Positions 28 through 48,622 of a stretch of DNA of 64,000 nt are shown here, piece by piece. The notes under the pieces were generated by a model. That model was not told where the DNA came from and did not search any database. It worked only from the letters and a program-made list of their open reading frames with translations. The translations under genes were made by a program, and so were the position numbers. This DNA comes from Heterodontus francisci (lineage: Eukaryota), in contig NW_027140825.1 in NCBI RefSeq assembly GCF_036365525.1, positions 1,426,001-1,490,000 on the forward strand. Reading direction: 5' to 3'. How positions within the stretch are numbered: position 1 is the first letter of the stretch; each line of letters starts with the position of its first letter.

Positions 28-66
28 TGTTTTTGTCTCACTCTGCCGCAGGGTTGTATCGCTGTG
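28..66 (-). promoter_or_regulatory. 23-bp-spacer recombination signal sequence
   Basis: CACAGCG (60-66) + 23 nt + ACAAAAACA (28-36). Confidence 0.92.
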
Positions 67-7444: not shown

Positions 7445-7483
7445 TGTTTTTATTGAACTGCTCCATCTCTCTGAGTCACTGTG
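7445..7483 (-). promoter_or_regulatory. 23-RSS
   Basis: CACAGTG (7477-7483) + 23 nt + ATAAAAACA. Confidence 0.88.
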
Positions 7484-7974
7484 CTGACTCCAGGCACAGA
7501 AATATAGGGCTGAGTGATTCTCCCACATGCTGATGGACTCCAGGTTGAACTGGGAGCCAGTCGGTCTCTTGGCGTTGAAACCCTCCACCGTCGCCTCAGA
7601 GTTCACACCTAGTGTAGCTGCGGAGTAAAACATCAGCCGTGGCTCCTTCCCCGGTCCTGTCTGTACCAGAACATGGAACCGCTACTCTCATCCTCCACAC
7701 GGCACTCCAGTCCCACTCCCTCCCCAGGAAATCTGGAGACAGCGGTGGGAGTCTGTCGGACCCTCGCTGAGATTGCGCCTGGGGGAAGAGACCGGGAGAG
7801 AAGAAAGTCAGTGAACATGGACAATCTGGGATGTGAAGAATGAAGGAAGGAGAGAAAGATAGAGAGAAAGAAAATAAGAAAGAGAGCTGTTAATAATAAC
7901 AATGGGGGTGGGGGAGGTGGTGAGAAAGATCCCTTACTTTGAAATAAGACCATGAGACTCAGTAACAGATACAT
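7484..7974 (-). pseudogene. TCR beta V pseudogene (CAWS-type), family B copy 1; leader 7938-7974, V exon 7484-7778
   Basis: Leader MYLLLSLMVLFQ with gtaag donor. V: SAISARVRQTPTAVSRFPGEGVGLECRVEDESSGSMFWYRQDRG / KEPRLMFYSAATLGVNSEATVEGFNAKRPTGSQFNLESISMWENHSALYFCAWSQ. A single 1-bp frameshift near 7650. The RP..QF.L and CAWS motifs are typical of TRBV. Confidence 0.88.
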
Positions 7975-8440: not shown

Positions 8441-8454
8441 TCTTTTTTACTTCA

Positions 8455-12668: not shown

Positions 12669-12707
12669 TGTTTTTGTTGAACTGCTCCATCTCTCTGAGT
12701 TACTGTG
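12669..12707 (-). promoter_or_regulatory. 23-RSS
   Basis: CACAGTA + 23 nt + ACAAAAACA. Confidence 0.82.
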
Positions 12708-12910
12708 CAGACTCCAGGCACAGAAATGCACGGCCGAGTGATCCTCCCACAGGCTGGAGGACTCCAGGTTGAACTGGGCGTCAGTCGGTCACTTGGCGCT
12801 GAAACCCCCCCCCCCCCCCCCCCACCGTCCCCTCTGAAATCACACTTGGTACAGCTGGGGAGTAAAACATTATTTTGAAATAAGACCATGAGACTCAGTA
12901 ACAGATATAT
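12708..12910 (-). pseudogene. TCR beta V pseudogene, family B copy 2 (leader fused to the 3' half of V by an approximately 300-bp deletion)
   Basis: Start codon changed to ATA; leader joined directly to MFYS; 19-nt G run; in-frame TGA; ends ..SAVHFCAWSL followed by an RSS. Confidence 0.85.
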
Positions 12911-17587: not shown

Positions 17588-17717
17588 TATATAGGAGTTG
17601 GAGCTGACACTGAGACTGACACTGTTCACAGCAGAGTGGACCCGAGACTGAGGAGCAAGCAGCTGGAACTGAACCGACAACATCTCCCACCCAGTGACAC
17701 CTCCATTGGAGACTCTG
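17588..17717 (+). promoter_or_regulatory. Candidate TATA box and non-coding first exon of the D8C gene
   Basis: TATATAG at 17588; strong donor TG|gtaagc at 17718; about 450 bp upstream of the ATG exon acceptor. Confidence 0.5.
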
Positions 17718-18183
17718 GTAAGCAGTCGGGTATGGGAGGACTGTTAGAAAAAGCAAAGGAGTTTGTCACTTGCTAGGTATTGACCCAGGGGGTGTGTGTC
17801 CTGCTTCTCCTGAAACAACACCATCTCCATGAATAACCTTTGTCAGAAATTCAAAGAGGTTTGTTTCAGGGATGCAGGAGACAGACCTGGAGGAGAGAGT
17901 CAGGAACACATGTGGTTTATTCATAAAAGCTTTGGAGAGTGGAAAGGGTGAAGGATTGGAGTCAAGTTCCTGATGTTTAACAAGAACATGTAGCTGAGCT
18001 CACCTCTGTCTGTAAGAGCCCCAGTGAGAGAGAGATAATTAGATGGAGCTCACCTCTCTAAAACAGATATACTGACAAACTCCTCGGCAACTCCCTATTT
18101 AATATTCCCTCCAATTTCCCTACTCGGTAATCTCTCTCAAATGTTTGTCTTGTGTTTCCCTTTCCAGAATCTCAGCCAGTAAG

Positions 18184-18217
18184 ATGTGGACTCTGCTGAT
18201 CATTCTGGGTTACCTGA
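18184..18217 (+). CDS. Signal-peptide exon MWTLLIILGYL
   Basis: Acceptor tttccag ending at 18167, ATG in an aagATG context, donor A|gtgagt (phase 1). Confidence 0.8.
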
Positions 18218-21200: not shown

Positions 21201-24200
21201 TGAGCAAGTACCACTTGATAGCACTGTCGATGACACCTTCCATCATTTTACTGATGATAGAGAGTAGACTGATGGGACGGTAATTGGGTGGGTTGAACTT
21301 GCCCTGCTTTGACTTGTCCTGCTTTTTATGTACAGGACATGCCTGGGCAGTTTTCCACATTGCAGTGTAGATGCCAGTGTTGTACCTGCACTGGAACAGC
21401 TTGGCTAAGGATGCAACAAGTTCTGGAGCACAGGTCTTCAGTACTACTTCCGCGATATTGTCAGGGCCCATAGCCTTTGCAGTATCCAGTGCCTTCAGTC
21501 ATTTCTTGATATCAAGCGGAGTGAATCGAATTGGCTGAAGACTGGCATCTGTGATGCTGGGGATTGCAGGAGAAGGCCGAGATGGATCATCAACTCAGCA
21601 CTTCTGGCTGAAGAATTTTGCAAATGCTTCAGCCTTATCTTTCGCACTGATGTGCTGGGCTCCCTGATCATTGAGGATGGGGATATTTGTGGGGCCACCT
21701 CCTCCAGTTAGTTGTTTAATTGTCTACTGCCATTCACGACTGGATGTCGCAGGACTGCAGAGCTTAGATCTGATCCGTCGGTTATCGGATCGCTTAGTTC
21801 TGTCGATCACATGCTGCTTCTGCTGTTTGGCATGCAGATAGTCCTGGGTTGTAGCTTCACCAGGCTGACACCTCATTTTGAGGTCTGTCATGTGCTGCAC
21901 TTTGCATGCCCTCCTGCACTCTTCATTGAACCACGTTTGGTTTCCTGGCTTGATGGTCATGATAGAGTGGGGGATATACCGGACCATGAGGTTACAGATT
22001 GTGGTTGAGTACATTTCTGCTGCTGCTGTTGTTCCCACAGCACCTCATGGATGCCCATTGTTGCATTGCTAGACTTGTTTGAATCTATCCCATTCAGCAC
22101 GGTGATAGTGCCACACAACACGATGGACGGTATCCTCAATGTGAAGGCGGGACTTTGGCTCCACAAGGACTGTGCGGTGGTCACTCCCACCAATACTGTC
22201 ATCAGCAGATGGATATGTGGCAGGCAGATTGGTGAGGATGACGTCAAGTATATTTTCTCCCCTTGTTGGTTCTGTCATCACCTGCCGCAGTCCCAGACTA
22301 GCAGCTCGGTCAGGAGTGGGCTGCAGCGACTGAGGGCAGTGGGATGTAGTGACTGAGGGGAATGAGATGTAGTGACTGAGGAGAGTGGGATGCAGTGAAT
22401 GTGGGGAGTGGGATGTAGCGACTGAGGGGAGTGGGATACAGTGACTGAGGGTAGTGGGATGTAGTGACTGAGGGGAGTGGGGTACAGTGACTGAGGGGAG
22501 TGGGATGTAGTGACTGAAGGGAGTGGGATACAGTGACTGAGGGGAGTGGGATGTAGTGACTGAAGGGAGTGGGATGCTGTAATTGAGGGAAGTGGGATGC
22601 AGTGACTGATGAGTAGGATGTGGTAACTGAGGGGAGTGGGGTACAGTGACTGAGGGGAGTGGGATGACGAGACTGAGGGGAGTAGGATGTAGTGACTGAT
22701 GGGAGTGGGATACAGTGACTGAGGGAAGTGGGATGCAGTGACTGATGAGTAGGATGTGGTAACTGAGGGGTGTAGGATGTAGAGATGCGGGGAGTGAGGT
22801 GCAGTGACTGAAGGGCATGTTATAGAGTGATTCGGTGGACTGGGTGTGGTGACATAGAGAAGTGGGATGCAGTGATTGAGGGTAGTAGGAGCAGTGACTG
22901 AGGGGAGTGGGATACAGTGACTGAGGGTAGTGGGATGCAGTGACTGAGGGGAGTGGGATACAGTGACTGAGGGGAGTGTGATACAGTGACTATGGGGAAT
23001 GGGATACAGTGACTGGGGGGAGTGGGATACAGTGACTGAGGGGAGTGTGATACAGTGACTGAGGGGAGTGGGAAGCAGTGACTGAGGGGAGTGGCATCCA
23101 GTGACTGAGTGGGAGTGGCATCCAGTGACTGAGTGGAGTGGGATCCAGTGACTGAGGGGAGTGTGATGCAGTGACTGAGGGGAGTGGGATGCAGTGACTG
23201 AGGGGAGGGGGATGCAGTGACTGAGGGGAGTGGGATACCGTGACTGAGGGGCGTGTGATACAGTGACTGTGGGGAATGGGATACAGTGACTGAGGGCAGT
23301 GTGATACAGTGGCTGAGGGGTGTGTGATACTGTGGCTGAGGGGAGTGGGATGCAGTGACTGAGGGGAGTAGGATACAGTGACTGAGGGGAGTGTGATACA
23401 GTGACTGAGGGGAGTGGGATACAGAGACTGAGGGAAGTGGGATGCAGTGACTGAGGGGAATGGGATACAGTGACTGAGGGGAGTGTGATACAGTGACTGT
23501 GGGGAATGGGATACAGTGACTGAGGGGTGTGTGATACAGTGGCTGAGGGGAGTGTGATACTGTGGCTGAGGGGAGTGTGATACAGTGACAGAGGGGAGTG
23601 GGATACAGTGACAGAGGGGACTGGGATACAGTGACTGAGGGGAATGGGATACAGTGACTGAGGGGTGTGTGATCCCTTCCATTTATCTTCACATCCTCCT
23701 CGCTTTCACTTGTCACTTGAACTTTTCCCAGTTCTGATGTAAGGTCACATATTAACATTAAACATCTTTCTGTTACTCAGTCACAGACTCTGCACTCACT
23801 GACCCGTGTGTAAATCACACAGTCCTGGACCAGCCCTGGAGGAGCAGCGATTGTGATGACACTCGGTGCTCCAGCCAGGTGAAGTGTGATGATGGTCTTC
23901 ACTTCGGATGGTACCGATTTAAAAGGTAATGTAAAGGAACAATTTCAGGGTAATCTCGTCAATATGGGCAGAATAAGGGATTTCCCCTACCTTCTGGTAC
24001 TATCTGATGGTACCAGTCTCTCTAACAGTTAATATTTACCATCAGTTCAGGGACTGACTCTGTGATTGTTATTTCAGTTCTGGTGGATGGAAGATTCCGG
24101 AGACTGCTGTCCCACATCATCACTGCTCCACACATGTTACAAGCTGGTTACAGGGTACTGTCAGCCTTTATAATATCAGATTTATATTCACTGTCCAGCA

Positions 24201-27200
24201 CTGTTCACATGGGTTACATTCTTCAATATTTCTAAATTCTCATTCCAGGTTCCCATCCCAGCGTGGGAGAGGGTGAAGTAACACGGACAGTTTGTTTATA
24301 CTGGGGTAGCAATCACTGCGACAAGGTCCATGAGATAAAGATCAAAAACTGCAGCAGTTACTTCGTTTATGAGTTGAAGTCGTTGTTTCATTTCGCTGCG
24401 TATTGTACAGGTACATTGATGTTTCTATATCATTCAGAGGCTGATTCTGGGTTGTCCTTTGTCACCCACCGAAATGAGACAGTTTACTCGCTCCCCTCCT
24501 TATTGAAAGGGACACAGTGAATAAAGTGTCTGAAACACAAAGTGTACTTCACTGAAACTCTAGGGAACTGAACTCTGCTGTCCCTGTCTATCAGGCACTC
24601 TGATCCCTGCAGTGTTCATGGCTCACGTCAGGTCCCCACTGCAGTGCTGGATACCTCACACTCCCTCTCCAGGAAACAATGTTCACGAGGAGTCGGATTG
24701 GATAGTCGAGGGTTTGATAAAGATGAAAATCTGACACTGTCTGGACTCGAGTACTAAATACATGAGCTCTTCGGGTTTCCTCCTCTCCGCCCTCTTCCTT
24801 TATTACAGATCCAGAGACTGCCACAACTGAGGAACCCGTGGAACAATCAACTCGAGAATCCACGAGGGGATCATCGTCTACCCCAGCGGTGTCTGGAACA
24901 TCAGGTACCCCCCTTGTGGGCCCATTCGAAACAGATTCCACACCCAATGTTACATCATAGAAGATCAGTCCTGGAGATCATCCAGTCTCTTACTGAGGGA
25001 AGTGGGATGGAGTGACTGAGGGGAGTGGAATGTAGTGACTGAGGGGAGTGGATGGGGCGACTGAGGGGAGTGGAATGGGGTGACTGAGGGGAGTGGGATG
25101 GGGTGACTGAGGGGGAGTGGGATGTAGTGATTGAGGGGAGTGGGATGTAGTGACTGAGGGGAGTGGGATGTAGAGACTGTGGGGAGTGGCATGCAGTGAT
25201 TAAGGGGAGTGGGATGATGTAATTGAGGGGATTGGGATGTAGTGAAGGAGGGGAGTGGGATGAAGTAATTGAGGGGAGTGGGATGCAGTGACAGAGGGGA
25301 GTGGGATGCAGTGACGGAGGGGAGTGGGATGATGTAATTGAGGGGAGTGGGATTTCGTGACTAAGGGGATTGAGAAGATGTGATTGCGGTGAGTGGGATG
25401 CAATGACTGAGGGCAGTGACATTTTATGACTGGGGAAAATGTAATGCAGTTCCTGTGCCAACTGGGATGCGGTGAGTGTGGACAGTGGATTGTCTCACAA
25501 TGGTTTTTATATACACTAGCATCTGTGATTTACTGTACTCTAATCTATCCAGTTCGAGCTTTCTCTCACTCCTTCTCTCCCCCATGTTTCTCTTCCTTTA
25601 TTACACATCCAGAGACTTCAACAACTGCAAGAACCAAGGAGCAAACAACTCCACACTCCATTGAGAAATCACCATCTAACCCAATCGATATTTTCACCTC
25701 AGGTGTCAGTATTGTGTTGATCAATCAGGACGGGTTGACTCTTGCACTGACTGCCTGATTTGGGTGAATGGAATCTACCGCACAGGAAGAGGCCACTCGG
25801 CCCCTCTTGCTACTCCTCTTTATCCAACCTTATCCCTCTTTTCCTTTCTCCTTCAGGTGTTTAACCAGATTTACCTCAAATTTCATTGCCCTGGACAATT
25901 CAGGATTAATTCTACATTCTCACTACACCTTGATGTACTTGTCCATAGTTCACTGAAGGCAGCAGCACAGGTAGATCATGTGGTTTGGAAGGCATATGGG
26001 ATACTTTCCTGTCTTAGCCGAGGCACAGAATATAAGAGCAGGGCGGTTACGATGGAGCTGTACAAAACGCTAGTTTGGCCACAGCTGGAGTACTGAGAAC
26101 AGTTCTGGGCACCACACTATAGGAAGGATGTGATTGCACTGGAGAGGGTGCAGAGGAGATTCACCAGGAGGTTGCCTGGGCTGGAGCATTTCAGCTGTTA
26201 AGAGAGGCTGGCTAGGCTATGGTTGTTTTCCTTAGAGCAGAGAAGGCTGAGGGGGGACCTGATTGAGGTATACAAAATTATAAGGGGCATTGATAGGTTA
26301 GATTGGAAGAAACTATTTCCCTTAGCGGAGGGGTCAGTAACCAGGGGGAATAGACTTAAGATAAAAGGCAAGAGGTTTATAGGGGATTTGAGGAAACAGA
26401 TTTTCACCCTGAGGGTGGTTGGAATCTGGAACACACTGTCTGAAGAGGAGGTAGAGGCAGGAACCCTCACAACATTTAATAAGTATGTAGATAAGCACTT
26501 GAAACGCCGCAGCATACAAGATTACGGGCCAAGTGCTGGAAAATGGGATTAGAATAGCTACGTGCTTGATGATCGGCATGGACACGATGGGCCGAAGGGC
26601 CTGTTTCCATGCTGTATAATTGTATGAGTCTAGGGCTGTGACGCACTTTTCAGTAAAGAGGCTTCCTCTGAAATCACCACTGGATTTACTTGTGACTGTT
26701 TTATTTTCTATCCCTCTCTCTCCACCCTCCTCTCCCACTGCCTCTTTCTGCACTTCCTGTCAGTATCTCTTTTGCTCTCTGTGTATCTTTCTCTTTATAT
26801 CTCTATATTTGCTCTCTCTCTCTGTCTGCCATTTTCACTTAGTCTCTGTCTATCTCTATCTGACAATTTCGTTTTCCCTCTGTCTCTCTCTTTATCTCTG
26901 TAACTCACTGCTCTCCCCATTTCGCTTCTTCTCTCGCTGTCTGTATCTGTTGCTCTCACTCTCGGACTCTTTCTTGATCTCTCACATTTTCTATCGCTCT
27001 CTTTCTTCTCATTTTTCTCTCCCTCTGTTGCCCTCTTTCACTCTGTCTCCCACTCTCACTGTCTCTAACTCTCACACGTTATCTCTCACTCACAGTGACT
27101 GAGGGCAGTGGGATGCATTGACTGAGGGGAGTGGGATGCATTGACTGAGGGGAGTGGGATGTAGTGACTAAGGGGAGTGCAATGTAATGGCAGAGGATGG

Positions 27201-30200
27201 TGGGGTGTAATGACTGAGAAGAGTGGGATAGACTGATGGAGGTGAATGGAATGCAATGACTGAGGGGACTGGGATGGAGTGGCTGAGCGGAGTTGTGTGA
27301 AAGGTTTGAGGGGAGTGAGTTGTAGTGAATGAGGGGAGTGGAATACTGTGACTGATATTAGATCCAGAGAGTGAGGGAGAGTGGGAGGCAGTGACGGAGG
27401 GGCTTGGGATGCCGTGACTGAGGGCAGTGCGATGGCCTGACTGAGGGAGTGGGATGTTGTGACTGAGGGAAGTGGGAGTGCGAGTTAGAGCCTGAGAGTA
27501 GTGGGATGTAGTGACAGAGGGAGGTGGGATGCAGTGACTGAGGGGAGTGGGATAGACTAACGGAGCTGAGTGGGATGTAGTGACCTATGGGAGTGGGATG
27601 CGGTGACTGAGGGGAGTGGAATGTAGAGACCGAGGGTTGTGGGTTACACAGGCTGAGGGGAGTGTAACACAGTGACTGAGGGGAGAGTGATACAGTGACT
27701 GAGGGGAGTGGGATACAGTGACTGAGGGGAGTGGGATACAGCGACTGAGGGGAGTGGGATACAGCGACTGAGGGGAGTGGGATACAGCGACGGAGGGGCA
27801 TGGGACACAGCGACTGAGGGGAGTGGGATACAGTGACTGAGTGGAGTGGGATACAGTAATGTCGTGATCAGGATGGAAGATGATGGATTTATAAAGATTG
27901 ATATCTCACTTTCTCCTGACACTAGTACCATCCTGTTGAAATGTTGTGTTTTTCTCCATCTCTCACTCTGCAATGTTTCCCTCCCTTTATTACAGAGCCC
28001 ATGACTTCCCAAACTCAGGAATCCGAGGAACAATCGACTGGAGAATCCACTGAGGTTTCATCCTCTATCCCAGTGGGCTCTGGAACCCCAGGTATCTGCC
28101 GTGCCGGATTATAATTACAGAAAGATGGAATCAGAGACTGGTTACAGCACAGAAAGAGGCCATTCAGCCCATCGTCACCGTGCCAGCTCTCTGCCAGAGC
28201 AATCCACCTACTCGCACTCCTGCCATTTCCCCATCACCCAGCAGATTGTTTCTCCTATGATAATTTTCCAATTCCCTTTTGAAAGCCTCAATTGAACCTG
28301 CCTCCAGCGCACTCACAGGCAGTGCACTCCAGACCCTAACCACTCGCTGTGTGAAAAGATTTTCCTGTCTCTGTTGCTACTTTTACCACTCACCTAAAAC
28401 CGGTGTCCTCTGGTTCTGGATTCTCCCACCAATGGGAACAGTTTCTCCCTGTCTGCTCTGTCCACATCCCTCGTGATTTTGAAAACCTCGATCAAATCTT
28501 CTCTTAATCTTCTCTTCTCCAGGGAGAACAGCCCCATCTTCTCCAATCTATCCAAGTAACTGACGTCCCTCATCCTGGGAAACATTCTTGTAAATCATCT
28601 CCGCACCCTCTCGAATACCTTAACATCCTTTCTAAGTATTAACCGCTCTCTCGACCTGTCTTGCCACCTTCAATGATCTGTGCACATGTGCCCCCAGGTC
28701 CCTCTGCCCCTGCACCCCTTTACAATTGTATCCTTTATTTTATATTGCCTCTCCTCCTTCTTCCGACCAAAATGCATCACTTCACAATTCTCTGCATTAA
28801 ATTTCATCTGCCACTTGCCTGCCCATTCCACAGGTCTGCCTAAGTCCACTTGAAGTCCATCACTATCCTTCTCACTGTTCACAACACTTCCATGTCTTGT
28901 GCCCTCCACAAATAAGGTTGTTGAGCTGCAGGCGCAGATAGCCACGTGGAAATATGCTGTTGTGGCAATAACCGAGTCCTGGTTCTAAGAGAGGCAGGAC
29001 TGGGTAGTGAATATTCCTGACTACAAGGTGTTCAGGAAAGAGAGGGGAGGAAGGAAAGGAGGAGGGGCATCAGTATTGTTTAAGGGGAGAATTACAGTGC
29101 TGGAAGGAGATGATGTCGCAGAGGAACCAAGGATAGAATCCATCAGATTAAAGTGAAACAACGAAAGAAATACCATGACCTTTCTGGGTGTATGTTCTAG
29201 GCCAACAACTAGTGGGAAAGATATAGATGAACAGATTTGCATAGAGCAACCAAGAGATGCAAGAGTTAAAGTGTAGATATATCATTGGGCAATAATTATC
29301 TGAATATAGTCTGGAATAGTAATAGTGTAAAGGGCACAGAGGGACAAGAGTTTCTCGAATATGTTCAGGAGAATTTCCTACGTCAGTTTGTTTCCAGTCC
29401 AACGAGGAAGGAGGCATTGTTGGATCTGATTCTGGGAAATGAGGTTGGACAAGTGAATTAAGGGTCAGCCGGGGAACATTTGGGGACAGTGACCAGCGTA
29501 TCATATGGTTTAGGTTGGCAATGGAAAGTGACAAGGAGAAATCCAGAGGAAAGATAATTCATTGAGGGAGAACCAATCTCAATGGAGTGAGAACAGATCT
29601 GACCCAAATAAACTGGAATCATATTACAGAGTCCCACACTGTGATGCCTGAAGTGCTCATTCCAAGAGACGCATCCAGTCTCTTAATGATGGAGTGTGGG
29701 GCAATGATAGAGGGCAGTTGGAAAACAGTGACTGAGGGGAGAGGGATCTCGTGACTGAGGGGGGCGGGGTGGGATGCAGTGACCGAGGGGATTGGGATGC
29801 AGTGACTGAGGGCAGCGGGACATAGTGACTGAGGGCAGTGGGACATAGTGACTGAGGGCAGTGAGATTTAGTGACTGAAGGGAGTGTGATGTATTGACTG
29901 TGCGCATTGGGATACAGTGACTGAGGAGATTGGGATACAGTGTCTGAGGAGATTGGGATACAGTGTCTGAGGGGAGTGTGATGCAGCAACTGAGGGGAGT
30001 GTGATACAGTCAATGAGGGGAGAGCGATACAGTGACTGAGGGAACGGTGATACAGTTACTGAGGGAAGTGTGATACACTGACTGAGGGAAGAGCGATACA
30101 GTGAGAAAGGGGAGTGTGATACAGGGACTGAGGGAGTGTGACATAGTGACTGAGGGGAGAATGATACAGCGACTGAGGGGAGAGTGATACAGCGATTATG

Positions 30201-36200: not shown

Positions 36201-39200
36201 ACAGTGAGTGAGGGGAGAGGGATATAGTGACTGTGGGGAGTGGGACAAAGTGACTGAGGGGAGTTGGATTTAGTTACTGAGGGCAGTAGGACATAGTGAT
36301 TGCGCGCAGTGGGATATAGTCATTGAGGGGCGAGGGATATAGTGACTGAGGGGAGTGGGATATAGTCATTGAGGGCAGTGGGACACAGTGACTGAGGGCA
36401 ATGGTACATAGTGACTGAGGGCAGTGGGACATCGTGATTGAGGTGAGTGGGACATAGTCACTGAGGTGAGTGGGATATAGTCATTGAGGACAGTGGGACA
36501 TAGTGACTGAGGGCAGTGGGACATAGTGACTGAGGGAAGTGTGACATCGTGACTGAGGGCATTAGGACATAGTGACTGAGGGGAGTGGGATATAGTCATT
36601 GAGGGCAGTGGGATATAGTGACTGAAGGCAGTGGGATATAGTGACTGAGGGCAGTGGGACATAGTGACTGAGGGAAGTGTGACATCGTGACTGAGGGCAT
36701 TAGGACATAGTGACTGAGGGGAGTGGGATATAGTCATTGAGGGCAGTGGGATATAGTGACTGAAGGCAGTGGGATATAGTGACTGAGGGCTGTGGGACAT
36801 AGTGATTGAGGGGAGTGGGACATAGTCACTGAGGTGAGTGGGATATAGTGACTGATGGGAGAGGGATGCAGTGATTGAGGGCAGTGGGATGTAGTAACTG
36901 AGCGGAGTGGGACGTAGTGACTGAGGGCCGTGGGATATAGTGACTTAGGGCAGTGGGATGTATTGACTTTGCGGAGTGGGATGTGGTAACTGCGGAGAGT
37001 GGGATGTAGTGACTGAGGTGAGTGGGATACAGTGACTGAGGGGAGTGGGATACAGAGACTGAGGGTAGTATGATACAGTGACTGAGGGGAGTGGGATACA
37101 GCAACTGAGGGGAGTGTGATACAGTCACTGAGGGTAGTGTGATACAGTGTCTGAGGGGAGTATGAAACAGTCACTGAGGGGAGTGTGATGCAGCGACTGA
37201 GGGTAGTGTGATACAGTGTCTGAGGGGAACTTGATACAGTGACTGAGGGTAGTGTGATACAGTGTCTGAGGGGAGTATGAAACAGTCACTGAGGGGAGTG
37301 TGATGCAGTGACTGAGGGGAGTGTGATACAGTGTCTGAGGGGAGTATGAAACAGTCACTGAGGGGAGTGTGATACAGCGACTGAGGGGAGTGTGATACAG
37401 AGACTGAGGGGAGTGTGATACAGCGACTGAGGGGAGTGTGATACAGTGACTGAGGGGAGTGGGATACAGAGTCTGAGGGTAGTATGATACAGTGACTGAG
37501 GGGAGTGGGATACAGCAACTGAGGGGAGTGTGATACAGTCACTGAGGGTAGTGTGATACAGTGTCTGAGGGGAGTATGAAACAGTCACTGAGGGGAGTGT
37601 GATACAGCGACTGAGGGGAGTGTGATACAGAGACTGAGGGGAGTGTGATACAGCGACTGAGGGGAGTGTGATACAGCGACTGAGGGGAGTGTAATTCAGT
37701 GACTGAGGGGAGTGTGATACAGCGACTGAGGGGAGTGTGATACAGTGTCTGAGGGGAGTGGGATACAGCAACTGAGGGGAGTGTGATACAGTCACTGAGG
37801 GGAGTGTGATGCAGCGACTGAGGGTAGTGTGATACAGTGTCTGAGGGGAACTTGATACAGTGAGTGAGGGGAGTGTGATGCAGTGACAGAGGGGAATGTG
37901 ATACAGTGACTGAGGGGAGTGTGATGCAATGACAGAGGAAGTGTGATACAGTGACAGAGTGGAGTCTGACACAGTGAGTGAGGGGAGTGTGATGCAGTAC
38001 AGAGGGAAGTGTGATACTGTGACTGAGGGGAGTGTGATACTGTGACTGAGCGAGTGTGACACAGTGACTGAGGGGAGTGTGATACAGTGTCTGAGGGGAG
38101 TGTGATACAGTGTCTGAGGGGAGTGCGATACAGTGACTGAGGGGAATGTGATACAGTGTCTGAGGGGAGTGCGATACAGTGTCTGAGGGGAGTGTGATAC
38201 AGTGTCTGAGGGGAGTGTGATACAGTGTCTGAGGGGAGTGCGATACAGTGACTGAGGGGAATGTGATACATGACTGAGGGGAGTGTGATACAGAGTCTGA
38301 GGGGAGTATGAAACAGTCACTGAGGGGAGTGTGATACAGAGACTGAGGGTAGTATGATACAGTGTCTGAGGGGAACTTGTTACAGTGACTGAGGTTAGTG
38401 TGATGCAGTGACAGAGGGAGTGTGATACAGTGACAGAGGGGAGTGTGATACAGTGAGTGAGGGGAGTGTGATGCAGTGACTGAGGGGAATGTGATACAGT
38501 GACTGAGGGGAGTGTGATACAATGACAGAGGAAGTGTGATACAGTGACAGAGTGGAGTCTGACACAGTGAGTGAGGGGAGTGTGATACAGTGACTAAGGG
38601 GAGTGTGATGCAGTGACAGAGGGAAGTGTGATACTGTGACTGAGCGAGTGTGACACAGTGACTGAGGGGAGTGTGATGGAGTGACTCAAGGACTGTGATA
38701 GTGTCTGAGGGGAGTAGGATACGGTCACTGAGGGGAGTGGGATGCAGCGACTGAGTGTACTGTGACACCGTGACTGAGGGGAGTATGATACAGTCACTGA
38801 GGGGAGTGGGATGCAGCGAATGAGGGTAGTGTGATCGAGTGACTGTGGGGAGTGGAATACATTGACTGAGAGGAATGTGATATAGTGACTGAGGGAAGTG
38901 TGATACAGTGACTGAGAGAGTGTGATGCAGTGACTGAGGGGAGTGTGATGCAGTGACAGAGGGAGTGTGATACAGTGACAGAGGGGAGTGTGATGCAGTG
39001 ACAGAGGGAGTGTGATACAGTGACAGAGGGGAGTGTGATACAGTGACTGAGGGGAGTGTGATACAATGACAGAGGAAGTGTGATACAGTGACAGAGTGGA
39101 GTCTGACACAGTGAGTGAGGGGAGTGTGATACAGTGACTAAGGGGAGTGTGATGCAGTGACAGAGGGAAGTGTGATACTGTGACTGAGCGAGTGTGACAC

Positions 39201-42200
39201 AGTGACTGAGGGGAGTGTGATGGAGTGACTCAAGGACTGTGATAGTGTCTGAGGGGAGTAGGATACGGTCACTGAGGGGAGTGGGATGCAGCGACTGAGT
39301 GTACTGTGACACCGTGACTGAGGGGAGTATGATACAGTCACTGAGGGGAGTGGGATGCAGCGAATGAGGGTAGTGTGATCGAGTGACTGTGGGGAGTGGA
39401 ATACATTGACTGAGAGGAATGTGATATAGTGACTGAGGGAAGTGTGATACAGTGACTGAGAGAGTGTGATGCAGTGACTGAGGGGAGTGTGATGCAGTGA
39501 CTGAGGTGAGTGTGATACAGTGACTGAGGTGAGTGGGATACAGTGAGTGAGGGGAGTATGATATAGTGACTGAGGTGAGTGTGATGCAGTGACCGCTGGG
39601 AGTGTGATGCAGTGACCGCTGGGAGTGTGATGCAGTGACTGCTGGGAGTGTGATACAGTGACTGAGGGGTGTGTGATACAGTAATGTAGTGAACAGGATG
39701 GAAGATAATGGTTTTATAAAGATTGTTATCTGTCATTCTCCTGACACGAGCACCATCCTGTTGACCTGATGTGTTTTTCTCCCTGTCTCACTCTGCAATG
39801 TCTCCCTCCCTTTAATACAGAACCCGTGACTTCCCAAACTCAGGAATCCGAGGAACAATCGACTAGAGAATCTACTGAGGTTTCATCCTCCACCCCAGCG
39901 GGTTCTGGAAGCTCAGGTACCTGTCATGTGGGGTCATCATCGCAGAATCATGGTATCAGTGACTGGTTACAGCACAGGAAGAGGCCATTGAGCCCATCGT
40001 CACCTTGACAGCTCTATGCCTGTGCAACTCATCTACACCCACTCCTGCAATTTCCCCATCGCACTGCAGATTATTTCTCCAATGACAATTTTCCAACTCC
40101 CTTTTGAAAGCCTCAATTGAACCTGCCTCCAGCACACTCTCTGGAAGTGCATTTCAGATCCTAACCACTCGCTGTGTGAAAAGGTTTTCCTGTCTCTGTT
40201 GTGACTTTTACCAGTCACCTAAAACCGGTGCCCTCCAGTTCTGGATCCTCCCACCAATGGGACTTAGGGGAGTGGGGCATAGTTAGTGGGGGAGATGGAT
40301 GTAGTGACTGAGGGGAGAAGGTTACACTGACCGAGGTGAGTGGGATATAGTGACTGAGGGCAGTGGGGCATAGTGACTGAGGGCAGTGGGATATAGTGAG
40401 TGAGGGGAGAGGGATGTAGTGACTGAGGGGAGTGGGACAGAGTGACTTAGGGTAGTGGGTTATAGTGAGTGAGGGGAGAGGGATGTAGTGACTGAGGGGA
40501 GTGGGACATAGTGACTGAGGGGAGTGGGATGTAGTTACTGAGGGCAGCTGGACATAGTGATTGAGGGCAGTGGGATGTCGTGACTGAGGGGAGTGAGACA
40601 TAGTGAATGAGGGGAGTGGGATATAGTGAGTGAGGGGAGAGGGATATAGTGAGTGAGGGGAGAGTGATATAGTGACTGAGGGGAGTGCGACATAATGACT
40701 GAGGGGAGTGGGATATAGTGAGTGAGGGGAGAGGGATATAGTGACTCAGGGGAGTGGGATATAGTTACTGAGGGCAGTAGGACATAGTGATTGAGGGCAG
40801 TGGGATATAGTCATCGAGGGGTGCGGAACATAGTGAATGAGGGGAGTGGGATATAGTCATTCAGGGGAGTGGGATATAGTCATTGTGGGCAGTGGGACAT
40901 AGTGACTGAGGGCAGTGGGACATAGTCACTGAGGTGAGTGGGATATAGTGACTGATGGGATATGGATGCAGTGATTGAGGGCAGTGGGAGATAGTCACTG
41001 AGCAGAGTGGGTCGTAGTGACTGAGGGCAGTGGGTTATAGTGACTGAGGGCAGTGGAATGTATTCACTGTGCAGAGTGGGATGTGGTAACTGCGGAGTGT
41101 GGGATGCAGTGACTGAGGTGAGTGGGATACAGTGACTGAGGTGAGTGTGATACAGTGACTGAGGGCAGTGGGATACAGTGACTGAGAGGAGTTGATACAG
41201 TGACTGAGATATTGTGATGCAGTGACTGAGGTGAGTGTGATGCAGTGACTGCTGGGAGTGTGATACAGTGACTGAGGGGTGTGTGACGCAGTAATGTCGT
41301 GAACAGGATGGAAGATAATGGTTTTATAAAGATTGTTATCTGTCATTCTCCTGACACGAGCACCATCCTGTTGACCTGATGTGTTTTTCTCCATGTCTCA
41401 CTTTGCAATGTCTCCCTCCCTTTAATACAGAACCCGTGACTTCCCAAACGCAGGAATCCGAGGAACAATCGACTAGAGAATCTACTGAGGTTTCATCCTC
41501 CACCCCAGCGGGCTCTGGAAGCTCAGGTACCTGCCTTGTGGTGTTATCATCGCAGAATCATGGAATCAGAGACTGGTTACAGCACAGAAAGAGGCCGTTC
41601 TGCCCATCGTCACTGTGCCAGCTCTCTGCCTGAGCAACTCACCTACTCCCACTCCTGCCATTTCCCCATCTCCCTGCAGATTGTTTCTCCGATGATAATT
41701 ATCCAATTCCCTTTTGAAAGCCTCAATTGAACCTGCCTCCAGCACACTCTCAGGCAGTGCATTTCAGATCCTAACCACTCGCTGTGTGAAAAGATTTTCC
41801 TGTCTCTGTTGTGACTTACATCACTCACCTAAAACCGGTGCCCTCTAGTTCTGGATCCTCCCACCAATGGGACTGAGGGGAGTGGGACATAGTTACTGAG
41901 GGGAGAGTGATGCGGTGACTGAGGGGAGAAGGTTGCACTGACCGAGGGGAGTGGGATATAGTGACTGAGGGCAGTGGGACATAGTGACTGAGGGTAGTGT
42001 GATACAATGACAGAGGAAGTGTGATACAGTGACTGAGAGAGTGTGATACAGTGACTGAGAGAGTGTGACACAGTGACAGAGGGAAGTGGGATACAGTGAC
42101 TGAATGTGTGGGATACAGTGACTGAGGGGATTGTGATACTGTGACAGCGGGGAGTGTGATACAGTGACTGAGAGAGTGTGATACGGTGACTGGGGTAGAG

Positions 42201-45200
42201 TGATACAGTGACTCCGGGAGTGTGATACACTGTCTGAGGAGAGTGGGATGCAGTGACTGAGGGGAGTGTGATGCAGTGTCTGAGGGGTGTAGGATACAGT
42301 GAACTGAAGGGAGTGTGATCCAGTGACTGGAGGAGTGTGATACAGTGACTGAGGGGAGTGTGATACAGTGACTGAGGGGAGTGTGATACAGTGACTCCGG
42401 GAGTGTGATACAGTGATTGAGGGGAGTGCGATAAAGTTACGGAGGGGAGTGTTATACACTGACTGAGGGGATTGGGATACAGTGAACTGAAGGGAGTGTG
42501 ATACAGTGACTGGAGGAGTGTGACACAGTGACTGAGGGGAGTGTGATACAGTGACTGAGGGTAGTATGATACAGTCACTGAGGGGAGTGCGATGCAGCGA
42601 CTGAGGGTAGTGTGATACAGTGTCTGAGGGGGATGTGAAACAGTGACAGAGGGTAGAGTGATACAATGACAGAGGAAGAGTGATACAGTGACAGAGGGGA
42701 GTGTGATACAGTGGGTGAGGGGAGTGTGATGCAGTGACTGAGGGGAGCATTATACAGTGACTGAGGGGAGTGTGGTACAGTGACTCCGGGAGTGTGATAC
42801 AGTGATTGAGGGGAGTGCGATAAAGTTACGGAGTGGAGTGTTATACACTAACTGAGGGGATTGGGATACAGTGACTGAAGGGAGTGTGATACAGTGACTG
42901 AGGGGTGTGGGATGCAGTGACTGAGGGGAGTGTGATACAGACACTGAGGGGAGTGGGATGCAGCGACTGAGGGTAGTGTGATACAGTGACTGAGGGGAGT
43001 GTGATACAGTCACTGAGGAGAGGGGAATGCAGCGACTGAGGGGAGTGGGGTACAGTGACTGAAGGGAGTGTGATACAGTGACTGAGGGGTGTGGGATGCA
43101 GTGACTGAGGGGAGTAGGAAACAGTCACTGAGCGGAGTGGGATGCAGCCACTGAGGGTAGTGTGTTACAGTGACTGAGGGGAGTATGATACAGTCACTGA
43201 GGAGAGTGGAATGCAGCGACTGAGGGGAGTGTGATAGAGTGACTGAGGGGAGTGGGATACAGTGACTGAGGGGAGTGTGATGCAGTGTCTGAGTGGTGTA
43301 GGATACAGTGAACTGAAGGGAGTGTGATACAGTGACTGGGGGAGTGTGATACAGTGACTGAGGGGAGTGTGATACAGTGTCTGAGGGGGATGTGATACAG
43401 TGACAGAGGGGAGAGTGATACAGTGACTCCGGGAGTGTGATACAGTGACTGAGGGGAGTGTGATACAGTGTCTGAGGGGGATGTGATACAGTGACAGAGG
43501 GGAGAGTGATACAATGACAGAGGAAGAGTGATACAGTGACAGAGGGGAGTGTGATACAGTGACTCAGGGAGTGTGATACAGTGATTGAGTGGAGTGCGAT
43601 AAAGTTACGGAGGGTAGTGTTATACACTGTCTGAGGGGATTGGGATACAGTGACCGAAGGGAGTGTGATTCAGAGACTGAGGGGTGTGGGATGCAGTGAC
43701 TGAGGGTAGTAGGATACAGTCACTGAGGGGCGTGGGAGGCAGCGACTGAGGGTAGTGTGATGCAGTGACTGAGGGGAGTGTGATACAGTGACTCCGGGAG
43801 TGTGATACAGTGATTGAGGGGAGTGCGATAAAGTTACGGAGGGGAGTGTTATACACTGACTGAGGGGATTGGGATACAGTGACTGAAGGGAGTGTGATCC
43901 AGTGACTGGAGGAGTGTGATACAGTGACTGAGGGGAGTGTGATACAGTGTCTGAGGGGAGTGTGATACAGTGACTGAGGGTAGTGTGATGCAGTGTCTGA
44001 GGGGGATGTGATACAGTGACAGAGGGTAGTGTGATGCAGTGACTGAGGGGAGTATGATACAGTCACTGAGGAGAGGGGAATGCAGCGACTGAGGGGAGTG
44101 GGATACAGTGACTGAAGGGAGTGTGATACAGTGACTGAGGGGTGTGGGATGCAGTGACTGAGGGGAGTAGGATACAGTCACTGAGGGGAGTGGGATCAGC
44201 GACTGAGCATAGTGTGATGCAGTGACTGAGGGGAGTATGATCCAGTCACTGAGGAGAGTGGAATTCAGTGGCTGAGGGGAGTGTGATAGAGTGACTGAGG
44301 GGAGAGGGATACAGTGACTGAGGTGAGCGTGATACAGTGAAAGAGGGAAGTGGGATACAGTGACTGAGAGAGTGTGATACAGTGACTGAGAGAGTGTGAT
44401 ACAGTGACAGAGGGAAGTGGGATACAGTGACTGAATGTGTGGGATACAGTGACTGAGGGGTGTGTGATACTGTGACTGAGGGGAGTGTGATACACTGACT
44501 GAGAGATTGTGATACAGTGACAGAGGGAAGTGGGATACAGTGACTGAATGTGTGGGATACAGTGACTGGGGGAGTGTGATACTGCGACAGTGGGGAGTGC
44601 GATACAGTGACTGATAGAGTGTGATACAGTGACTGGGGGAGTGTGGTACATTGACTGAGGGGAGTGTGATACTCTGTCTGAGTAGAGTGGGATGCAGTGA
44701 CTGAAGCGAATATAATGCAGGACTGAGTGGAGTGTGATACATTGAATGAGGGGAGTGTGAGACTCTGTCTGAGGGGAGTGGGATACAGTGAACTGAAGGG
44801 AGTGTGATACTGTGACTGGGGGAGTGTGATACAGTGACTGAGGAGAGTGTGATACACTGTCTGAGGGGAGTGGAGTGCAGTGACTGAAGGGAATATAATG
44901 CAGTGACTGAGGGGAGTGTGATACAGTGCCTGAGGGGCGTGTGTTGCAGTGGCTGAGGGGAGTGTGATACAGCGACTGAGGGGAGTGTGATACAGTGACT
45001 GAGGGGAATGTGATAAAGTGACTGAGGTGAGTGTAATGCAGTGACTGAGGGGAGTGTGATAGAGACTGAGGGCAGCATGATGCTCAAACTCAGGAATCCG
45101 AGGAACAATTGACTAGAGAATCTACTGAGGTTTCATCCACTACCCGAGCGGGCTCTGGAAGCTAAGGTATCTGCTTTGTGGGGTTATCATCGCAGAATCA

Positions 45201-48200
45201 TGGAATCAAAGACTGGTTACGGCACAGAAAGTTTCTGTTCAGCCCATCTTCACTGAGCCAGCTCTCTGGCAGTGCAACTCACCTACTCCCACTCCTGCCA
45301 TTTTCCTGTCGCCCTGCAGATTTTTTCTGCCATGACAATTATCCAATTCCCTTTTGAAAGCCTCAATTAAACCTGCCTCCAGCACACTCTCATGCAGTGC
45401 ATTTCAGATCCTAACCACTCGCTGTGTGAAAAGGTTTCCCTGCCTCTGTTGTGACTTTTACCACTCACCTAAATGCGTTGCTCTCTAGTTCTGGATCCTC
45501 CCACCAAGAGGAACAGTTTTTCCCTGACTACTCTGTCCAGTTCCCTCTTGATTATGAACATCTTGCTCAAATCTCGTCTTAATCGTCTCTTCTCCACGGA
45601 GAACAGCCCCAGCTTCTCCGATCTATTCATGTCACTGACGTCCCTCATCCCGGGAACCATTCTGGTAAATCTTCTCTGCACCCTCTCGAATACCTTAACA
45701 TCCTTCCTAAGTATTGACCGCTCTCTCGACCTGTCTTGCCACCTTCAATGATTTGTGCACATGTCCCCCCAGGTCCCTCTGCCCCTGCACCTCCTTTAGA
45801 ATTGTAGCCTTTATTTTATATTGCCTCTCGTTCGTCCGACCAAAATGAATCACTTCACAATTCTCTGTGATAAATTTCATTTGCCAGTGTCTGCCCATCC
45901 CACCAGCCTGTCTATGACCTCCTGACGTCTATCACTGTCCTCCTCACAGTTCACAATACAACCAGGTTTTGTGTCATCTGCAGAATTTGAAAGTGTGCCC
46001 TGTACGCCCCAGTCTATGTCATTAATATATACATCAGGAAAAACAGTGGTCTGAGCAATATTAGAGAGCAAAGCACAGATGCACAGAGAATTAGGAGGGA
46101 CAGATAACACTGGAGTCGATAAGAGTATCGTATTAGACGGGGGCAGTGGAAGAGGAAAGGAGATAAGCTGTAAATTCAGTTTAATGTGTGTGTATATGGA
46201 TGCACGGAGAGTGGTAAATAAGGTTGTTGAGCTTCAGGCGCAGATAGCCACGTGGAAATATGATGTTGTGGCAATAACAGGGTCCTGGCTCTAAGTGGGG
46301 CAGGACTGGGTAGTGAATATTCCTGACTACAAGGTGTTCAGGAAAGAGAGGGGAGGAAGGAAAGGAGGAGGGGTATCAGTATTGATTAAGGGGAACATTG
46401 CAGTGCTGTTTTCTTTTCTCTCTCTTGTTCTCACTCATTCCAGATCTCCCTTACTCTTTTCTGTCTCACTCCTGTCGCCTTCCCTCCTTTTCTCTCATTC
46501 CTGCTCTCTGTTGTTCTCTGACACCACTTTCCCCCTGTCGTTTCGCTGATCACTTTGATAATCTCCTGAATTTTCTCTGTTAGTTTTTTTTCCTTGTCGG
46601 AGTCGTAACTGATTCTGCAGCCGATGATGTCTGGTGTCTCCCCTCGGTAAAGGCTGGTATACATTGATTCAGTGTGTCGAGGGAGTTAGATTACATACGA
46701 GAGGAGGTTCTGTGTTAAAACACTTCTGTCCACTCATCCAGCGTTCTGAATCCCAGTGAAATTCCTCTTGTCTTTATTTGATCCTCTCAGACTCGGGGAT
46801 TCCGTCTACTCCCGAGGAACCTCCCGACTCCCAGCCTGTTTCTGATGATGGTGGGAACATTTCAGATTCTCCACATTTCAGGAATATTAAATCCCTCCTC
46901 CTGTCTCAGTCTGGCACAAATATATCAGGACCGAGGGCCTCCAAACAGCTGTGTGATCGTTCTGTGTAGGGAAACCCATCGTTCTCACTCTCTCTCTCTG
47001 CCTTGTCTGTGCTGTCAGACAAGAGTTGCAGTCGCTTGTGTTCAGTCTGAGTGGAATCATTGGGAAACACAGAAACGTAAACGTTCAGAAATTCCTTCAG
47101 AAATATCTTTGAGCTTCTATCTCACATCCCTCTCTCTCTCTTACTCTCAGTTTTATCTCTGTCTCTCCTTTATCTGCCTTTCACACGCATATATAAATAT
47201 ATTTCATTTCTGTAACCGCCTCTCTCCGATGCGGGTCTCAGTTTCTCCAGCTCCCTCTTTCGCCTCACTCTGTCTCCCACTCTCTCTGATGTTCTGTCTC
47301 CCTGTCTGTCTCTCTGACTCTCACTTTCTCTCTCTGTCTCTCTCACAGATGCTCTTTGTCTGTCTCTCTGTCTTTGTCTTTGTCAGAGGGACAGAGAGCA
47401 TCAGAGAGAGAGAGAGAGAGTGAGAGTGAGAGACAGAGACAGAGAAAAGGGCAGTGAGACCGGAGTAAACACGGAATGCAAATGATCTCGGGAGATGGAA
47501 CAAGAGGCAACGGAGAAGAGAGTGCAGGATAGAGGATGATAACACAGGGAGGGCAGATTAGAGACAAGACGAGTTGAGATAGAGAGAATAACAGAGACAG
47601 ATGAACAAACGAGTGGATGACAAACTGGAGGAAAGAGAGTTTAAATTAGAGAGGCGAGATCATTCGAAATACGTCCCGTGCCCTGTGCTAAACTCTGGGT
47701 GTGTTCAACCTGTTGATGTTGTGACTGTTGTGTTTAGATACCAAATACAAGAGGATTAATGTGAAGATCACTTCAATGACTGATCTGGATGATGAAACTG
47801 CAAAGAGAATCGTTGTGGAGAGGGTAAGAGACTGCACTGTACTGAGGAGAAACACGGGAGACAACAGATCCTCCCTCTCACTGTCTGTATTCACTGAATG
47901 GGAACTCCAGGTCATTATTTAAACAGCTCTAATTCCCCTCTGCTTATCTTCTGGTCCCCCAGATCAGGCTTGTGAGGGGTTGAATGGGCTTCCTCCTGAG
48001 CCTGTGTGAAAGGCTCGAGAGCGGGTGAGGGGGCTGAATGGCCTTCTCCTGTTCCTGTGTAAGAACTCGAAAGAGGGGCTCAATGGCCTCCTCCTGTTCC
48101 TGTGTAACAGATTCGAGGGGATGAATGGCTTCCTCGTTGTACGGTAACCTCTCTCTGATCTTCCCTCTCACTCTCCCCATTCTCTCTTTATGTCCTTTCT

Positions 48201-48622
48201 ATCTCTGTCTCTTTCTCTGCCTCGCTCACCCACTCTGTATTTCTCTTTCTTTGTCTTTCTTTCTGTCTGTGTCTGTCTCTCCCTCACTGCATCTCTGACG
48301 ACCTCTCGCTCTCACGCCATCTGTTTCTCTACCTCTGTCTCAATCCCTGTAGCTCTCCCACCCTCCCTCTCCATCTCTCCCTCTATCTGAGTATCTTTGC
48401 CTCACCCTGTCTCTCACTGTCTTGTCCCCACCCTTTCTCCCGATCTCTGTCTGTATCCTCTCTGTCTCTTTCTATTCACTCCTCCCCTTGCAGTAATACT
48501 CATCGTTTCTCCTCTCTGCGATGCAGATGAAGCAGATGTTCCAGGATCAGTGTCCACACACGAAGCTCGAATTGGATCCAGAAGACGTTCAGTGCTCGGC
48601 TAGTGCGCCTGTGGAAGTGTGA
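18184..48622 (+). CDS. Secreted uromodulin/GP2/OIT3-like protein: signal peptide, 2 x D8C (D10C), mucin-like stalk, C-terminal module; no ZP domain; about 570 aa
   Basis: Exons with GT-AG boundaries and compatible phases: 18184-18217, 20148-20292, 20445-20521, 20616-20780, 23781-23925, 24078-24154, 24249-24410, 24809-24904, 25613-25702, 27996-28091, 30718-30813, 35099-35194, 39821-39916, 41431-41526, 46791-46850, 47738-47823, 48527-48622. Total 1713 nt with an open frame if the stop-bearing exon at 33467-33562 is skipped. Confidence 0.78.
18270..19760. mobile_element. L2 LINE fragments (minus strand about 18270-19140, plus-strand 3' end about 19140-19760)
   Basis: LILLELSAAFDTIHH RT motif; L2 tail ctggctccc...ttaaaacctacctctttgac. 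Confidence 0.7.
20148..20780 (+). CDS. D8C/D10C domain 1 (three exons)
   Basis: DPCVNHTVLDQPWRSIDCNETECSGQVKCDQNLAQGWYRFKS / SGGWKIPDTVVPDSHCSTRASGWLQG / SHPSVGNGEVTRTVCFNKAGNRCHKTQEIKIENCSSYFVYELKPPPDCEAVYCT; matches the UMOD/GP2 D8C pattern (DPC, GWYRF, WL.G.HP, YVY.L, YCT). Confidence 0.92.
21060..22320 (-). mobile_element. CR1-clade LINE fragment (end of endonuclease to start of RT)
   Basis: PTRGENILDVILTN..SDH; GPDNI..NYRPISLLSIISKMME..QFGFR. Confidence 0.85.
23781..24410 (+). CDS. D8C/D10C domain 2 (three exons)
   Basis: DPCVNHTVLDQPWRSSDCDDTRCSSQVKCDDGLHFGWYRFKS / SGGWKIPETAVPHHHCSTHVTSWLQG / SHPSVGEGEVTRTVCLYWGSNHCDKVHEIKIKNCSSYFVYELKSLFHFAAYCT; duplicate of 20115-20945 including introns. 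Confidence 0.9.
24809..41526 (+). CDS. Array of symmetric phase 1-1 mucin-like exons (96 bp; consensus EPVTSQTQESEEQSTRESTEVSSSTPAGSGSS)
   Basis: Copies at 24809, 25613 (90 bp), 27996, 30718, 33467 (internal TAG), 35099, 39821 and 41431, each with a pyrimidine tract, cag acceptor and g|gt donor. Confidence 0.82.
25930..26625 (+). mobile_element. CR1 LINE 3' end
   Basis: FSLEQRRLRGDLIEVYKI...FTLRVVGIWNTL and 3' tail. Confidence 0.85.
28125..29620. mobile_element. CR1 debris in the exon-repeat unit (minus-strand 3' end plus plus-strand endonuclease fragment); repeated at 30850-32580 and 45200-46400, truncated in the other units
   Basis: LEKMGLFSLEKRRLREDLIEVFKI (minus strand); KYAVVAITESW..DWVVNIPDYKVFRK..GGG (plus strand). 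Confidence 0.8.
45085..45166 (+). pseudogene. Dead copy of the mucin exon
   Basis: 5' end and acceptor replaced by satellite; last codon TCA changed to TAA. Confidence 0.75.
46791..48622 (+). CDS. 3' exons of the D8C gene (linker and C-terminal module)
   Basis: DSGIPSTPEEPPDSQPVSDD / DTKYKRINVKITSMTDLDDETAKRIVVER / MKQMFQDQCPHTKLELDPEDVQCSASAPVEV*; phases 1-1, 1-0 and 0-stop are consistent. Confidence 0.68.

Follow-up and report, generated by a model that had tools for sequence, protein, structure and literature searches.

The gene at 17588-48622 on the + strand of a 64-kb window of horn shark (Heterodontus francisci) DNA is very probably a paralog of an elasmobranch-wide family of secreted proteins in which D10C heads are followed by a stalk and a small tail, with no ZP module. 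The window is the whole stretch analysed, and gene coordinates are given as positions in it. The same interpretation takes the stalk of this copy to have been amplified and its position among antigen-receptor variable (V) segments to have arisen by duplication of a cassette; more tentatively, its product is predicted to be a microbe-engaging glycoprotein. The family form comprises a signal peptide, one to five heads with the D10C fold, an acidic Ser/Thr/Pro stalk and a C-terminal domain of ~55 aa. Such a glycoprotein would be soluble or borne in mucus, and by comparison with GP2, uromodulin (UMOD) and the zebrafish omcins its heads, raised on an O-glycosylated stalk, could engage microbes either by offering the N-glycan of a sequon of the GP2 N65 type to mannose-binding adhesins or through their variable loops, with the tail perhaps linking chains together.

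Structure of the gene

Read from the DNA and from the mapping of homologs, the gene is spliced at GT-AG sites over ~31 kb and consists of small + strand exons, with AG/GT borders at every splice site used in the predicted model (Table 1). Its D8C units were first traced by a six-frame scan as DPC and YFVYELK pieces, in two copies each. With exon 20618-20779 as the query, HMMER returned 966 proteins at E <= 0.001, and tblastn of the best 150 of these 966 matches onto the window placed every exon. The exon of the signal peptide, a mere 11 codons long, was located via the homologs' N-terminus MWTLL; the N-terminus is identical in the RefSeq proteins P0010 and P0167. Each D8C module is in phase 1 at entry and exit. 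A first-pass annotation of this DNA had described a spliced, ZP-less gene with signal peptide, two D8C domains, stalk and tail, and every one of these elements was recovered at the place it gave on the + strand. The open frame that it described holds for the core exons, and it requires that stalk exon S5, with an in-frame TAG at 33487, be skipped.

No ZP, transmembrane or glycosylphosphatidylinositol (GPI) part was found downstream of the gene to the window end, and tblastn with uromodulins of frogs that bear a ZP module detected no ZP-like exon across the whole window, the D8C exons alone being matched. Window exons were searched singly, and P0170 and P0167 served as stand-ins for the spliced product of this copy. 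The Pfam family D8C_UMOD matches the last exon of each module (E 2e-5) and two stretches of P0170, the RefSeq product of the locus (PF23283; 79.3 bits, cut-off 27). Whole family proteins contain D8C_UMOD twice above the cut-off and no other Pfam domain, PF00100 (ZP) being absent from P0170, P0167, P0010, P0049, P0057 and P0013. Lacking PF00100 and having a hydrophilic C-terminus, the protein falls outside the ZP-filament class formed by UMOD, GP2 and the omcins.

Fold and disulfides of the heads

Among solved structures, P0170 matches the human GP2 decoy-module crystal chain 7p6r with E 6.7e-23 and UMOD with about 3e-20. The fold was judged on the AlphaFold model of P0167 (360 aa), an intact paralog with a short stalk that lies elsewhere in the genome and whose head exons are 84-91% identical to those of the window copy. 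This model has a mean predicted local distance difference test (pLDDT) score of 80.8, about 90 in the heads and below 50 in the stalk. It superposes on the GP2 crystals 7p6r, 7p6s and 7p6t (Foldseek E 1.7e-14 to 1e-13) with a target-normalised template-modelling score of 0.81-0.85 at 37-41% identity, and the two chains that superpose best (7p6r_B and 7p6s) give a root-mean-square deviation of 1.3-1.6 A. Judged on this paralog, the modelled heads have the D10C fold of the GP2 crystal.

The D10C domain of GP2 is held by the disulfides C1-C8, C2-C9, C3-C6, C4-C10 and C5-C7 (PMC8930769). The shark heads have an additional Cys pair (IDC...TEC) within a loop. In rays, C2 (the Cys of KC) and C9 are lost together in the family alignment, which is consistent with the pairing of C2 and C9 in GP2 and indicates that this disulfide is dispensable for the fold.

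Distribution of the family in sharks and rays

A word search with P0010 gave 95 relatives at E <= 1e-10, nearly all from sharks and rays, under the automatic names 'uncharacterized', 'uromodulin-like', 'GP2-like', 'OIT3-like' and 'mucin-5AC-like'. They occur in the genera Mustelus, Carcharodon, Cetorhinus, Rhincodon, Chiloscyllium, Hemiscyllium, Scyliorhinus, Heptranchias, Pristiophorus, Leucoraja, Amblyraja, Rhinoraja, Hypanus, Hemitrygon, Mobula and Pristis. Horn shark itself contributes at least five loci, which lie on different scaffolds, and the proteins closest to the window exons are Heterodontus francisci RefSeq models. D8C is the only domain on record for the elasmobranch members, in one to five heads, and both gene number and head number differ by lineage. 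The two head types of the window gene are common to horn shark and whale shark.

The tail of the window copy is conserved, about 60 aa long, and ends in CSASAPVEV before the stop, without a hydrophobic end; its exons differ from the intact P0167 at 2 of 59 residues. The C-terminal domain of about 55 aa is present in 31 of the 227 fetched proteins, mostly no more than 20 residues from the C-terminus, a few odd models apart. The D10C-stalk-tail architecture is already predicted in RefSeq across sharks and rays and is unstudied, and the window copy is one more paralog. Our literature search found no paper on the elasmobranch family, on elasmobranch GP2-like genes, or on maps or passenger genes of the horn-shark TRB locus.

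Amplification of the stalk exons

The stalk is encoded by exons of 96 nt (S2, 90 nt), all of phase 1-1, whose unit is E-P-V-T-S-Q-T-Q-E-S-E-E-Q-S-T-R-E-S-T-E-V-S-S-S-T-P-A-G-S-G-S-S with variants. Nine copies are present, seven of them usable, one with a nonsense codon (S5) and one broken. The usable stalk of 234 aa contains 26% Ser, 17% Thr, 15% Glu and 10% Pro, so that Ser, Thr and Pro together make up 53% in repeated exon units of 32 aa, a composition that may suit a mucin-like, O-glycosylated stalk. At S2, the acceptor position usual in the family has AC in place of AG, but the frame is preserved by another AG that lies 6 nt downstream.

The stalk copies resemble each other over the exon and about 300 bp of the downstream intron. 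Since the likeness extends into the intron, the copies are attributed to recent duplication of exon and intron together rather than to conservation of the exon alone. A 23-bp minisatellite, GACTGAGGGGAGTGTGATACAGT, occupies well over 10 kb of the introns, and its arrays bracket each stalk exon copy. The growth of the stalk exon, with its flanking intron, to nine copies most likely came about through unequal crossing-over of these minisatellite arrays. The minisatellite also accounts for a strong GC skew. Long open reading frames on the - strand (type SHSPQSLYHTPLSHCITLPSVTV, up to 419 aa) were rejected as genes, being minisatellite that is open in all - strand frames.

State of the window copy

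Contigs from four of five small runs (two studies; presumed RNA) were aligned to 17500-22300. The pieces fall within exons only (17608-17717, 20145-20292 and 20615-20777). One joint connects exon 1 to exon 2, at 18168 and beyond, and runs X1 and X4 both contain the GT..AG joint 20520->20615, which is the predicted D1b/D1c intron. Transcription of the family, with splicing as in the model, is thus supported. The contigs, although confirming the predicted splicing, carry the letters of paralogs and not those of this copy. Every piece differs from the window by 4-12 bases per 100, the window base at 20239, 20711 and 20713 occurs in no contig of the four runs, and changes at 20485-87, 20690-91 and 20711-13 produce DFHC, HWTQ and IINC, the residues of P0167, indicating that the transcripts come from paralogs. 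Contigs drop rare variants, however, and the absence of the window copy from them is weak evidence and no proof.

RefSeq models the locus as an "uncharacterized protein" of 548 aa, P0170. Its identity to the window is 100% on D2c, where it shares the unusual SLFHFAAYC, as well as on S4, S6 and an exon of 72 aa at 49497-49712. P0170 is aberrant: it begins with an ATG of a different frame within D1a, uses a cryptic donor, has no signal peptide, skips S2, S5, S7 and S8, and has retroelement-derived exons in place of the normal last exon. These retroelement-derived exons are at 45482-45664, 46596-46655 and 49497-49712. P0163, a second isoform at a paralogous locus, has homologous exons, from which some of the exonisation may be real.

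The paralog letters in the contigs and the form of P0170, together with the wear described next, weigh against a functional window copy. They favour the alternative that it is a decaying duplicate, effectively a pseudogene that is unexpressed or gives only truncated messages or messages targeted by nonsense-mediated decay, with intact paralogs such as P0167 carrying the function. We regard this as a serious possibility that falls somewhat short of even. S5 has its in-frame TAG between intact splice sites, but skipping it preserves the frame, since the stalk exons are all of phase 1-1. The S2 acceptor is lost from the family position and shifted, and the ninth stalk copy is broken. In head 2, C9 is replaced by Phe, a change found in this copy only, as all six other horn-shark domain copies fetched keep C9; it leaves the partner C2 unpaired and the head with an odd number of Cys. 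Odd Cys counts nevertheless occur in other annotated members (head 1 of P0167 and of P0013), and the rays do without the whole C2-C9 pair. Decay would also agree with introns swollen by minisatellite to a 31-kb gene. Against it, each of the 17 core exons has an open frame and canonical splice sites, and the tail has stayed within two residues of P0167.

The two modules (20100-20950 and 23733-24585) are 82.9% alike in introns and 82.0% in exons, and that exons are no more alike than introns also speaks for decay. This similarity, in spite of head types shared with the whale shark, could reflect either very slow neutral change or gene conversion between the modules. The tail adds a further difficulty, on the structural side: in the P0167 model it forms one helix (residues 319-337, pLDDT 68-83) with extended segments around it, and a protein atlas search gave no meaningful structural neighbour for this domain. 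On balance, whether the window copy still yields a full-length protein stands at roughly even odds.

The sequon and the role of the heads

In GP2, N65 within 61-DPCQNYTLL-69 bears oligomannose-5, and the N65A change abolishes FimH binding (PMC8930769). The decoy module of GP2 and UMOD consists of a beta-hairpin together with the D10C domain, the groove that separates the two holding the glycan (PMC8930769). The first-pass annotation had pointed to an equivalent sequon in both heads, and this was correct: DPCVNHT aligns with DPCQNYT residue for residue, Asn on Asn. Its proposal of a GP2-type decoy module fared less well, and several findings argue against it. The beta-hairpin half is absent, only 7-8 residues separating DPC from the signal peptide in head 1 or from the preceding head in head 2, and alignments of the heads with GP2 chains begin at or just before DPC. 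The five-disulfide set of GP2 is incomplete, with C3 and C6 missing from both heads in the GP2 and family alignments. An N-x-S/T sequon follows DPC at 137 of 400 DPC motifs in the fetched family proteins, about a third, and in many sharks and rays the Asn gives way to D, T, H or S. With no hairpin and a sequon that varies within the family, the sequon would support a GP2-like decoy mechanism only weakly.

The heads could instead be the binding parts themselves, making the family germline-diversified secreted recognition proteins rather than presenters of a decoy glycan, which we think unlikely but worth weighing. In a qualitative check of seven horn-shark domain copies, the core was invariant and changes clustered in five regions: those that follow DC and ST, those that precede C4 and C9, and the one between C5 and C7. 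Lineage variation in gene and head number would suit such a role, as would the lack of a beta-hairpin to shelter a high-mannose glycan (PMC8930769). Loop variability, however, may be simple relaxation, the dN/dS ratio between the two heads of the window copy is 0.47, below 1, and the sequon is kept in both heads of the window copy and of P0167. To our knowledge, moreover, no ligand has been described for any D10C domain acting as a binder.

An extended form of this idea is more doubtful still: the D10C heads would form a germline-diversified recognition repertoire whose copy, head and stalk numbers are reshuffled by minisatellite crossing-over and which is amplified with TRBV cassettes, as an innate family nested in an adaptive locus. 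The preferred interpretation of a microbe-engaging family glycoprotein leaves room for either glycan or loop contacts.

Position in the V-segment array

The first-pass annotation had placed the gene antisense within a T-cell receptor (TCR) V array, and the orientation is as described: every V-like sequence is on the - strand and has its recombination signal sequence (RSS) at the low-coordinate end, and the D8C gene is on the + strand. Its statement that TCR V segments lie on both sides holds for V remnants, which do flank the gene; most are pseudogenes or fragments, and the sole intact V resembles antibody heavy-chain variable (VH) domains. The RSS of this intact V (3-425) reads CACAGCG, a 23-nt spacer and ACAAAAACA. 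It has a short complementarity-determining region 2 with additional Cys residues (KWMCNEHGSCGPG). VH-like and TRBV-like segments share the array and the orientation. CACAGTG heptamers are only twofold enriched in the window, owing to repeats.

Self-comparison matched 2843-8849 with 8483-13773 (88-90%), 7622-8844 with 60742-61969 (88.5%), and 12870-15148, which borders the gene on its left, with 61054-63381 (85%). The last match shows that the V-bearing flank is duplicated, in line with the earlier suggestion that the gene was duplicated together with the V locus. These matches are compatible with repeat units some 48 kb long, each consisting of a V remnant, a 37-bp repeat and the D8C gene, and the next copy of the gene would then begin just beyond the window end. 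The position of the gene in the array is best put down to duplication of a cassette that unites a V pseudogene, a repeat and the D8C gene. The duplicated cassettes contain tandem repeats of 36-38 bp (A/C-rich; 5514-5859, 11108-11575 and 55531-56248), 37 bp (GGAGGAGGTTACAGAGATAGGGAGGGTTGTNGGGGCT; 14717-15148 and 62957-63973) and 62 bp (6313-6817), which cause the AT-skew peaks.

Given the V orientation, the D-J-C region, which is outside the window, should lie to the left. Deletional V(D)J joining across a gene removes that gene from the rearranged allele. Because of the orientation of the V segments and the position of their RSS, joining from a V on the right would remove the D8C gene on that allele. 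Trypsinogen genes are non-TCR genes within amniote TRB loci, where they have multiplied and are removed on alleles rearranged across them. Nothing in our analysis points to a functional tie to the TCR locus, and the situation resembles that of these passengers. That the position is functional, the gene being co-regulated with the array, switched off by V(D)J deletion or kept in place by selection, is very improbable: gene and V-bearing flanks were duplicated together and right-hand joining would delete the gene, but tandem segmental duplication gives co-duplication without selection, nearly all nearby V segments are dead, deletion hits only rearranged T-cell alleles in which the gene need not be expressed, and the trypsinogens are TRB passengers that need no TCR link. 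Cassette duplication remains the preferred account of where the gene lies.

Features of the window

The features are listed in Table 1. Fragments of reverse transcriptase of the LINE (long interspersed nuclear element) type lie downstream of the gene (50747-53914, +) and in its first large intron (21085-21471, -).

Table 1 Features of the D8C gene and the flanking V segments in the 64-kb window. UTR, untranslated region.
Feature	Position	Strand	Basis and remarks
TATA box (TATATA)	17588..17593	+	Read from sequence, upstream of exon 1
Exon 1, 5'UTR, donor GTAAGC	about 17608..17717	+	Sequence; paralog RNA contigs begin at 17608
Exon 2, signal peptide MWTLLIILGYL	18168..18217, ATG 18184	+	Phase-1 donor GTGAGT
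D8C/D10C module 1, 10 Cys	20148-20292, 20445-20521, 20616-20780	+	Sequon Asn 20180-20182
D8C/D10C module 2, 9 Cys	23781-23925, 24078-24154, 24249-24410	+	Sequon Asn 23813-23815; C9 to Phe (TTC, 24392-24394); 100% match to P0170
Stalk exon S1, 96 nt, phase 1-1	24809..24904	+	Used in P0170
Stalk exon S2, 90 nt	25613..25702	+	Homologous exon used in paralog P0094
Stalk exon S3	27996..28091	+	Sequence and comparison with P0170
Stalk exon S4	30718..30813	+	Sequence; 100% identity to P0170
Stalk exon S5, AG/GT intact, in-frame TAG 33487-33489	33467..33562	+	Sequence
Stalk exon S6	35099..35194	+	Sequence; 100% identity to P0170
Stalk exon S7	39821..39916	+	Sequence
Stalk exon S8, peptide identical to that of S7	41431..41526	+	Sequence
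Ninth stalk copy, dead: no acceptor, in-frame TAA 45163	about 45083..45166	+	5' part is minisatellite
Exon C1, acidic/Pro linker SGIPSTPEEPPDSQPVSDD	46791..46850	+	100% match to P0010
Exon C2, first half of C-terminal domain TKYKRINVKITSMTDLDDETAKRIVVER	47738..47823	+	Sequence and homologs
Exon C3, second half of C-terminal domain MKQMFQDQCPHTKLELDPEDVQCSASAPVEV, two Cys	48527..48622	+	Stop TGA 48620-48622
23-bp minisatellite GACTGAGGGGAGTGTGATACAGT arrays	22313..45072		Fill introns from module 1 to the last stalk copy
Intact V exon, antibody-VH-like	3..425	-	V-set E 6.4e-11; best solved relatives are antibody VH domains
VH-like pseudogenes with stops, 23-RSS	3411-3719 and 9066-9356	-	Sequence
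TRBV-like pseudogene, one frameshift, 23-RSS at 7483	7421..7785	-	Ends YFCAWS; best PDB matches are TCR beta chains
TRBV-like V C-terminal fragment, V remnant nearest the gene on the left	12645..12803	-	Sequence comparison
TRBV-like V N-terminal fragment, cut by retroelement, nearest on the right	60729..60878	-	Sequence comparison

Significance and comparison with known systems

The family represents a ZP-less use of the GP2/uromodulin head, with two heads, a stalk predicted to be glycosylated and a new small tail, and it is widespread in sharks and rays. If its members bind microbes, they would show that the D10C head needs no filament to work, and the family would be an old vertebrate case of a fast-evolving secreted defence family. 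The window copy itself illustrates how a stalk may be lengthened by exon amplification between minisatellite arrays, and it displays modes of decay, one Cys having been lost, one exon having gained a nonsense codon and the automatic model being poor; beyond this it adds little to the family-level picture.

Among proteins on record, the RefSeq predictions from sharks and rays, such as XP_067884563.1 (P0010), the 'GP2-like' XP_043533706.1 of Chiloscyllium and the 'uromodulin-like' XP_041038352.1 of Carcharodon, share family and architecture with the window gene. They are automatic, unnamed and unstudied, and P0170 departs from the canonical exon set. The trypsinogens of amniote TRB loci are likewise passenger genes in a TCR region, but they belong to an unrelated protein family.

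The nearest relatives that have been studied are the zebrafish omcins (omc1-15), in which five D10C domains are combined with EGF IV, a ZP module and GPI anchoring and which are encoded in a tandem cluster; omc5 protects zebrafish against E. coli, and the omcins have been called teleost-specific (PMC11415648). They resemble the shark family in having several D10C domains per protein, lineage-specific tandem clusters and rapid duplication and loss. In contrast to it they keep EGF IV, the ZP module and a predicted GPI anchor, and a position in an antigen-receptor locus is not described for them.

With GP2 and UMOD (7p6r/7p6s/7p6t and 7pfp), the shark protein shares the D10C fold, in which the disulfides C1-C8, C2-C9, C4-C10 and C5-C7 are recognisable, and the N-x-T sequon at the position of GP2 N65. 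It differs from them in lacking the beta-hairpin, the EGF domains, the ZP module and the GPI signal, and hence the filament. It carries tandem heads, a Ser/Thr/Glu/Pro stalk and a small tail unrelated to any part of GP2 or UMOD.

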